A stretch of DNA of 64,000 bases from Octopus sinensis (lineage: Eukaryota), in contig NC_043020.1 in assembly GCF_006345805.1 (NCBI RefSeq), positions 1,612,001 to 1,676,000 of the forward strand, in the 5' to 3' direction. Shown piece after piece: positions 1,125 to 23,066 of the stretch (position 1 is the stretch's first letter; each line of letters opens with the position of its first letter). The translations under genes and the position numbers were made by a program. The notes below the pieces were generated by a model, which made no database searches, was not told the origin of the DNA, and saw only the letters and a program-made list of their open reading frames with translations.

Positions 1125-23066
<21,942 letters not shown>

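Follow-up and report, generated by a model that had tools for sequence, protein, structure and literature searches.

A DNA-encoded Lys-Glu pair at the Q/R site of an octopus ionotropic glutamate receptor subunit

An ionotropic glutamate receptor gene of Octopus sinensis encodes a lysine followed by a glutamate at the tip of the M2 pore loop, and this pair is germline-encoded and selectively maintained, which would probably make the product a hard-wired GluA2(R)-type subunit for which no RNA editing is needed. The lysine occupies the Q/R site, the textbook Ca2+-permeability switch in non-NMDA glutamate receptors, at which mammals generate an arginine through RNA editing. The gene, referred to here as gene A, is located on the minus strand of the window, by which we mean the whole stretch of 64,000 nucleotides that was analysed, and all positions given below are those of the window.

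Gene A corresponds to XP_036368967.1, a protein of 846 aa annotated as "glutamate receptor ionotropic, delta-1-like". Using tblastn, 12 exons of this protein were located in the window (1124-23066, minus strand), with a reading frame that is open across all 12, while the final exon or exons, which carry M4, are positioned past the window start. The pore is encoded by the tenth exon, and the spliced product of exons 10-12 (265 aa) is 100% identical to residues 471-735 of XP_036368967.1. Exon 10 (6272-6596, minus strand, 325 nt) covers the terminal part of S1, M1 and the pore helix of M2, stopping after the first base of the Gly579 codon; it is preceded by an acceptor AG at 6598-6597 with a polypyrimidine tract upstream, and the minus strand of 6270-6596 holds a single open frame, starting DVNLAIG..., with abundant stops in the other two frames. 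The exon end reads ...CTG AAA GAA G|GT, in which AAA (6276-6278, minus strand) is the codon of Lys577, equivalent to GluA2 Q586, and GAA (6273-6275, minus strand) that of Glu578, equivalent to GluA2 Q587 at the +1 position, a column that is Gln in at least 90% of 52 aligned relatives. The Lys codon is four bases away from intron 10 (3775-6271, minus strand, ~2.5 kb), whose GT donor (6270-6271, minus strand; AAG|GTTGGT) is in phase 1, a phase common to the homologous exon in contig L001 discussed below. The Gly codon is consequently split between G6272 and the GG at 3774-3773, and exon 11 (3557-3774, minus strand; acceptor AG at 3776-3775) completes Gly579 and runs to the start of S2, ending in CAG|GT at 3557. 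Exon 12 (1124-1375, minus strand) encodes the S2 lobe, including an Asp equivalent to GluA2 E705.

A gene model that differs from this structure is present in the annotation of O. vulgaris, where CAI9740382.1 (499 aa) is without exons 10-11 and has exon 9 joined straight to exon 12, despite exon 10 being intact in O. vulgaris DNA (OX597837.1). Skipping of exons 10 and 11 amounts to an in-frame loss of 543 nt (181 codons) and would delete M1-M3; this model may represent either a real isoform or an annotation error.

The assignment of Lys577 and Glu578 to particular pore positions was examined by sequence and by structure. In a phmmer search against all PDB chains, the pore stretch of gene A aligned without gaps to GluA1 and GluA2 (E ~5e-30), which identifies Lys577 (AAA) as the Q/R site and Glu578 as +1. 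In GluA2 numbering the stretch reads L585, K586, E587, G588, K589, G590, I591, E592 and P593, and the register is anchored on both flanks by W, G580, G588, P593, SGR, WW and YTA. The same pore register was obtained in ungapped BLASTP alignments to ~140 relatives. An AlphaFold model based on a 52-sequence alignment (mean pLDDT 76.6, and 76-82 around Lys577) predicts a pore helix at residues 564-575, a non-helical segment at 576-586 and the M3 helix at 587-616, and since the pore helix ends just before Lys577 in this model, Lys577 would be placed at the C-terminal apex of the helix, like GluA2 Q586. No register shift was therefore detected, with BLASTP and the modelled helix ends in agreement with phmmer, and the original prediction was correct in assigning Lys-Glu to the Q/R and +1 positions, in noting that KG replaces CD just after (K589 and G590, i.e. 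+3 and +4) and in stating that the site abuts the exon 10 donor, the Lys codon ending 4 nt before the last exon base.

The sequence CTG AAA GAA G|GT is found in the DNA of O. sinensis, O. bimaculoides and O. vulgaris, representing three independent assemblies, and the pore segment of the O. bimaculoides orthologue, XP_014773476, is identical to that of gene A. Comparison of O. sinensis with O. bimaculoides yielded a dN/dS of 0.22 for the whole gene (dS ~0.2) and of 0.078 for exons 10-11 (dS 0.245), indicating strong purifying selection on the channel region, and these channel exons constitute the most constrained part measured. To place the pair in a wider context, residues were counted in 149 representatives of 50%-identity clusters. 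Position 586 is occupied by Q in 89 of these, R in 11, E in 11, P in 6, G in 6, H in 5 and K in 4; position 587 is Q in 135 and E in 5; and position 590 (+4) is D or E in 116 and G in 12. Gene A accounts for two of the four K586 sequences, and the others come from the barnacle Amphibalanus (KAF0301154, LLKQGSD) and from Seison (KAI3380582, FLKQNV). Both the pairing of Lys with Glu and the K-E-G-K-G combination were encountered only in gene A among the 149 representatives. The notion of a genomically fixed basic filter of unusual charge is thus sustained by its presence in three Octopus genomes and by the scarcity of K586 (4/149) and E587 (5/149). A DNA-encoded basic residue at the Q/R site is not new in itself, as K586 also occurs in the barnacle and Seison and R586 in 11 representatives; judged from these alignments, the gene A pore is unusual in having Glu in place of Gln at +1, in having lost its acidic residue at +4 and in its K-E-G-K-G combination.

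In the clade that surrounds gene A, position 586 accommodates M, N, E, S, H or Q, whereas position 587 is almost always Gln, and the variability at 586 suggests that change at this position is tolerated in the lineage. A homologous exon with 50% protein identity and the same phase-1 donor was found in three Logan contigs (L001-L003, from ERR12370323, ERR12408771 and ERR12408770, respectively), where it ends TCC CTC CAA GAA G|GT and thus encodes Gln-Glu, suggesting that Glu at +1 is older than Lys; the implied polarity of a Q-to-K change is provisional in that it depends on one homologous exon of uncertain orthology. The difference between AAA in gene A and CAA in L001 is a C/A transversion, not an A/G change. 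The two protein versions of the L001-L003 exon (P0154 and P0055) differ in the pore helix, reading WLMFGY and WLIFGY, respectively, which suggests a polymorphism or two close species.

With regard to receptor class, the available sequence comparisons identify gene A as an apparently fast-diverged AKDF-type ionotropic glutamate receptor subunit of a spiralian clade. Pfam searches of gene A returned Lig_chan (PF00060, 3.9e-24) and Lig_chan-Glu_bd (PF10613, 2e-08), and the precomputed matches on XP_036368967.1 are PF00497, PF00060 and PF10613, in line with the channel domain and the Lig_chan-Glu_bd/SBP_bac_3 ligand-binding lobes of the iGluR superfamily. The amino-terminal domain has no match in Pfam or PDB by sequence. 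Foldseek searches with the AlphaFold model produced alignments of 835-887 columns to GluD2, GluD1, GluA2/3 and GluK2 chains (E down to 9e-39), the best matches being GluD2 and GluD1, and this full-chain match indicates that the first 400 residues form a sequence-divergent amino-terminal domain (ATD), so that the model and the Foldseek results together reveal the three-layer ATD-LBD-TMD architecture. Arg485 is invariant across the 52-sequence alignment and the gene A Asp aligned to GluA2 E705 (Asp705) provides an acidic residue at that position, and the retention of both suggests that the ligand is an amino acid. The selectivity residues 653/655 are ambiguous, reading G-S-D or S-D-K depending on a one-residue shift. 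The M3 gating motif reads SYTAHLVAF as compared to SYTANLAAF, with 7 of 9 residues kept, and the criterion applied to this motif by Ramos-Vicente et al. (2018, PMC6307864) is at least 4 conserved residues.

All of the nearest relatives of gene A that were found are from octopods, and the closest non-octopus relatives, 32-37% identical, are those of Pecten, Haliotis, Nucella, Mytilus, Elysia and the nemertean Lineus. When 124 representatives are arranged in a neighbour-joining tree, gene A first joins its paralogue gene B (represented by XP_014773475) and a third paralogue, XP_014771816 of O. bimaculoides (pore HMQQVVINEP), which is also present in Argonauta hians, and this octopod trio is nested in a spiralian clade with Owenia, Tubulanus and Macrostomum. 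This clade is apart from the AMPA, kainate, IR25a-like and NMDA groups, which were named by their pore motifs, and from deuterostome 'delta-like' sequences. Three representatives with the motif TPQGGGEAP (P0087, P0124 and P0135), which have Pro at the Q/R site, we take to be IR25a-like. IRs are characterized by the absence of an ATD, except in IR25a/IR8a, by the loss of canonical ligand-binding residues and by grouping with IR25a/IR8a or with divergent IRs. They have the iGluR fold and Lig_chan in common with gene A, and their pores also depart from Q at 586; however, gene A possesses an ATD (according to Foldseek), retains Arg485 and Asp705 and belongs to a different clade from the IR25a-like representatives, for which reasons an IR identity was rejected and the earlier reference to an IR clade has to be abandoned. 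The spiralian clade that includes gene A is probably the molluscan Phi/Zeta group described by Zeng et al. (2021, PMC8437780). The Phi class was defined by Ramos-Vicente et al. (2018, PMC6307864), who found no Phi subunit with Q586 and a SYTANLAAF motif that is less conserved in some of them; gene A was not found by accession or peptide in the supplements of that study, where Ocbimv22 identifiers are used.

Gene B, a head-to-head paralogue of gene A situated ~28 kb away (51263-62746, plus strand), has XP_014773475, 'glutamate receptor U1', as its orthologue in O. bimaculoides and shows about 33-47% identity to gene A in shared exons. Its pore exon is past the window end (64000), and the O. bimaculoides protein has the pore LMQGQNNEP, with Met at the Q/R site. 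The third paralogue, XP_014771816, is encoded on the same O. bimaculoides chromosome as the orthologues of genes A and B. The product of gene B is a candidate heteromer partner of gene A. Between the two genes there is an intergenic assembly gap of 100 N (31853-31952), and an intron of gene B contains a 188-aa ORF (61079-61645, minus strand) with the N-terminus of a Tc1/mariner-type transposase (HTH_Tnp_Tc3_2, 1.7e-14). Elsewhere in the window, ORFs at 158-496 (plus strand) and 29063-29413 (minus strand) resemble by eye a retroelement polyprotein tail and mariner-type transposase remnants, respectively, with no Pfam match at E<=0.01.

An alternative to a fixed filter is A-to-I editing of one or both codons in octopus tissue (changing Lys to R, E or G and Glu to G), which would result in a tunable filter like that created at the GRIA2 Q/R site, a scenario that we consider very improbable. 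It draws its appeal from the heavy recoding of coleoid cephalopods, in which a large share of neural transcripts is affected (Alon et al. 2015, PMC4384741; Shoshan et al. 2021, PMC8382921), from the A-rich nature of the Lys-Glu codons and from the beginning of intron 10. The first 150 nt of this intron (6121-6271, minus strand) are identical at 144 of 150 positions between O. sinensis and O. bimaculoides, which at 96% makes this the best-conserved intron flank, compared to 81-93% for the other alignable flanks, and places it above the exon (93%). Unusual conservation of intron sequence adjacent to an exon was reportedly recognized by Hoopengardner in 2003 as a signature of editing substrates. 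A more specific version, in which K577 and/or E578 is edited in some tissue with the aid of the conserved intron 10 repeat as part of the substrate, which would constitute a convergent counterpart of GRIA2 Q/R editing, is similarly improbable; if it were true, the pore charge of a cephalopod iGluR (K, R, E or G) would be set post-transcriptionally.

The repeat in question, 5.5 tandem copies of the 16-nt unit ATTAAATGATTACTTG as read on the transcript strand, lies within the first 110 nt of intron 10 (6164-6251, minus strand), and in the fold of the exon 10/intron 10 junction the array pairs with itself and not with the exon, which speaks against a part in an editing substrate; it could equally enhance splicing at the weak AAG|GTTGGT donor or serve as an RNA structure element. 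ADAR enzymes need double-stranded RNA, which at a site of the GRIA2 Q/R type is formed with an intronic or exonic complementary sequence. The junction as a whole (301 nt) folds at -52.3 kcal/mol, which equals the mean of dinucleotide shuffles (z 0.00), so that the complementary sequence sought by folding the junction was not found beyond chance, and the spliced exon 10/11 segment (300 nt) likewise folds no better than shuffles (z +0.41). In the partition-function fold, CGCUGAA (6283-6277) pairs only with short exonic partners, forming a 7-bp helix that is the only one to touch the site. A search for inverted repeats in 3700-6700 revealed only microsatellite or SINE-like pairs among the 25 longest listed, none of which extends over 6260-6300. 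The best duplex between a 39-nt target containing the site and 120-nt windows of intron 10 reached -22.8 kcal/mol, weaker than that of 87% of shuffled targets, the control being dinucleotide-shuffled versions of the site sequence, and for duplexes with the upstream pre-mRNA 20% of the shuffled targets do as well.

A targeted scan for complements to the site yielded one 10-nt perfect match at 4919-4928, 1.3 kb into intron 10. This match is part of CGGGCUUCUUUCAG (4919-4932, minus strand), located in a SINE-like repeat and complementary over 10 nt to CUGAAAGAAG at the exon end; as the corresponding segment is missing from the syntenic element of O. bimaculoides, the complementarity was judged to be coincidental and this candidate editing partner was rejected. 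Besides this SINE-like element, intron 10 contains many (TACA)n, (CA)n and (TA)n microsatellites. Copies of the SINE-like element, flanked by (TA)n/(CA)n, are found at 4828-5061 (minus strand) and near 6910-7134, 19242-19455 and 44200-44400, and translated ORFs through these copies share a recurring peptide; it is the copy in intron 10 that holds the 10-nt complement.

The sequence context of the codons also argues against recoding. ADAR enzymes favour adenosines with a 5' A and a 3' G and disfavour an adenosine that follows G. At the gene A site, the adenosines in favoured context (6276 and 6273) are third codon positions at which a change would be synonymous, and A6278 and A6274 both follow G. 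No genomic G at the AAA GAA positions was seen in O. bimaculoides or O. vulgaris (both AAA GAA) or in L001-L003 (CAA GAA), i.e. in none of these relatives does the DNA carry the G that editing would mimic. Protein-collection searches returned nothing at E<=1e-10 with the 265-aa query, and with the full XP_036368967.1 the only sequences retrieved were the query, the model from O. vulgaris and some distant NMDA-type or plant proteins, with no transcript-derived variants among them. Literature searches on the gene A accession or on Lys at the Q/R site produced nothing relevant, and editing is not discussed in the Aplysia iGluR paper. In short, editing at the gene A site lacks structural or comparative support, and the part of the original prediction that envisaged it is not supported: folding is at shuffle level, the sole complement is not conserved and the codon of the more distant relative, CAA, has no G.

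The effect of Lys577 and Glu578 on the pore can be anticipated from AMPA and kainate receptors, in which a basic Q/R residue is a determinant of low Ca2+ permeability, low conductance and absence of polyamine block. It has been described that in these receptors the filter is lined at its narrowest point by the Q/R residue, and that the acidic residue at +4 aids Ca2+ permeability as well as polyamine block (Ramos-Vicente et al. 2018, PMC6307864). By analogy, Lys577 would introduce a permanent positive charge where the selectivity filter is narrowest, a charge that the adjacent Glu578 may partly offset, and the Asp or Glu normally present at +4 would be missing from the filter, since K-G stands in place of C-D and brings a second Lys to +3. 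Given the fixed Lys charge and the missing +4 acidic residue, GluA2(R)-type behaviour is expected, meaning that the subunit would confer lower Ca2+ permeability, unitary conductance and polyamine block, and gene A would most likely act as a modulatory partner in heteromers. The ion selectivity, agonist and partners proposed here for gene A are predictions.

Other readings of the same residues have been weighed against such a GluA2(R)-type role. Glu578 together with the Glu at +6 could neutralise Lys577, in which case Ca2+ permeability would be little changed. It is also conceivable, although in our opinion unlikely, that gene A is GluD-like, i.e. a trans-synaptic or signalling receptor or a silent partner, so that its filter residues are of little consequence for ion flux. 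The NCBI name (delta-1-like) and the top Foldseek matches (GluD2 and GluD1) point in this direction, as do the absence of the +4 acidic residue, an M3 motif that reads SYTAHLVAF and not SYTANLAAF, and the long, fast-evolving branch; on the other hand, the greater constraint on the channel exons (0.078 versus 0.22) fits a pore that is in use (although the pores of GluD receptors are likewise conserved), 7 of the 9 residues of the gating motif are retained, and the tree separates gene A from the deuterostome 'delta-like' representatives. A qualitative shift in selectivity brought about by the K/E/K filter, for example an appreciable anion permeability beyond a lower Ca2+ flux, is decidedly less probable. 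The two lysines (586 and 589) and the lack of an acidic residue at 590 would favour it, and homomeric R-form AMPA/kainate channels have been said to allow anion permeation (a finding attributed to Burnashev, 1996), yet Glu 587 and Glu 592 restore negative charge and the net charge over 586-592 is ~zero. Finally, the probability that the pair is an artefact of assembly or annotation, or belongs to a pseudogene in decay, is close to negligible: even though CAI9740382.1 of O. vulgaris omits exons 10-11, this explanation was rejected in view of the identical codons in three independent assemblies, the open frame across 12 exons and the dN/dS of 0.22.

The GluA2(R)-type subunit that we favour for gene A can be compared with several known systems. 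The Q/R sites of GluA2 (GRIA2), GluK1 and GluK2 lie at the homologous apex position of the re-entrant M2 loop, as evidenced by ungapped alignment. Gene A differs from them in that its basic residue is a Lys, is encoded in the DNA and is associated with no detectable editing substrate, in that +1 is Glu in place of the near-invariant Gln, and in that +3/+4 is Lys-Gly and not Cys-Asp; moreover, it is not an AMPA or kainate orthologue according to the neighbour-joining tree. The trait of an encoded basic Q/R residue is shared with 11 Arg and 2 Lys subunits of the 149 representatives, although some of the Arg586 sequences may be cDNA-derived edited forms. These subunits keep Gln at +1 and mostly Asp or Glu at +4, and none of them has K-E-G-K-G. 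In the spiralian AKDF-type relatives (Pecten, Haliotis, Nucella, Mytilus, Elysia, Lineus, Owenia and Tubulanus), the pores follow an x-Q-G-G-D/E pattern with a variable residue at 586, mostly Glu, Asn or Ser, followed by Gln at 587, whereas gene A has Lys followed by Glu.

In conclusion, gene A represents a new pore variant within a known receptor superfamily and in a gene that was already annotated, and its practical value is modest at present. It nevertheless offers a natural experiment on how the charge at the filter apex sets selectivity, and it is a candidate for a low-Ca2+ or modulatory subunit from a clade of spiralian receptors of which hardly any have been characterised. It also indicates that an animal rich in RNA editing need not use editing at the classic Q/R position.
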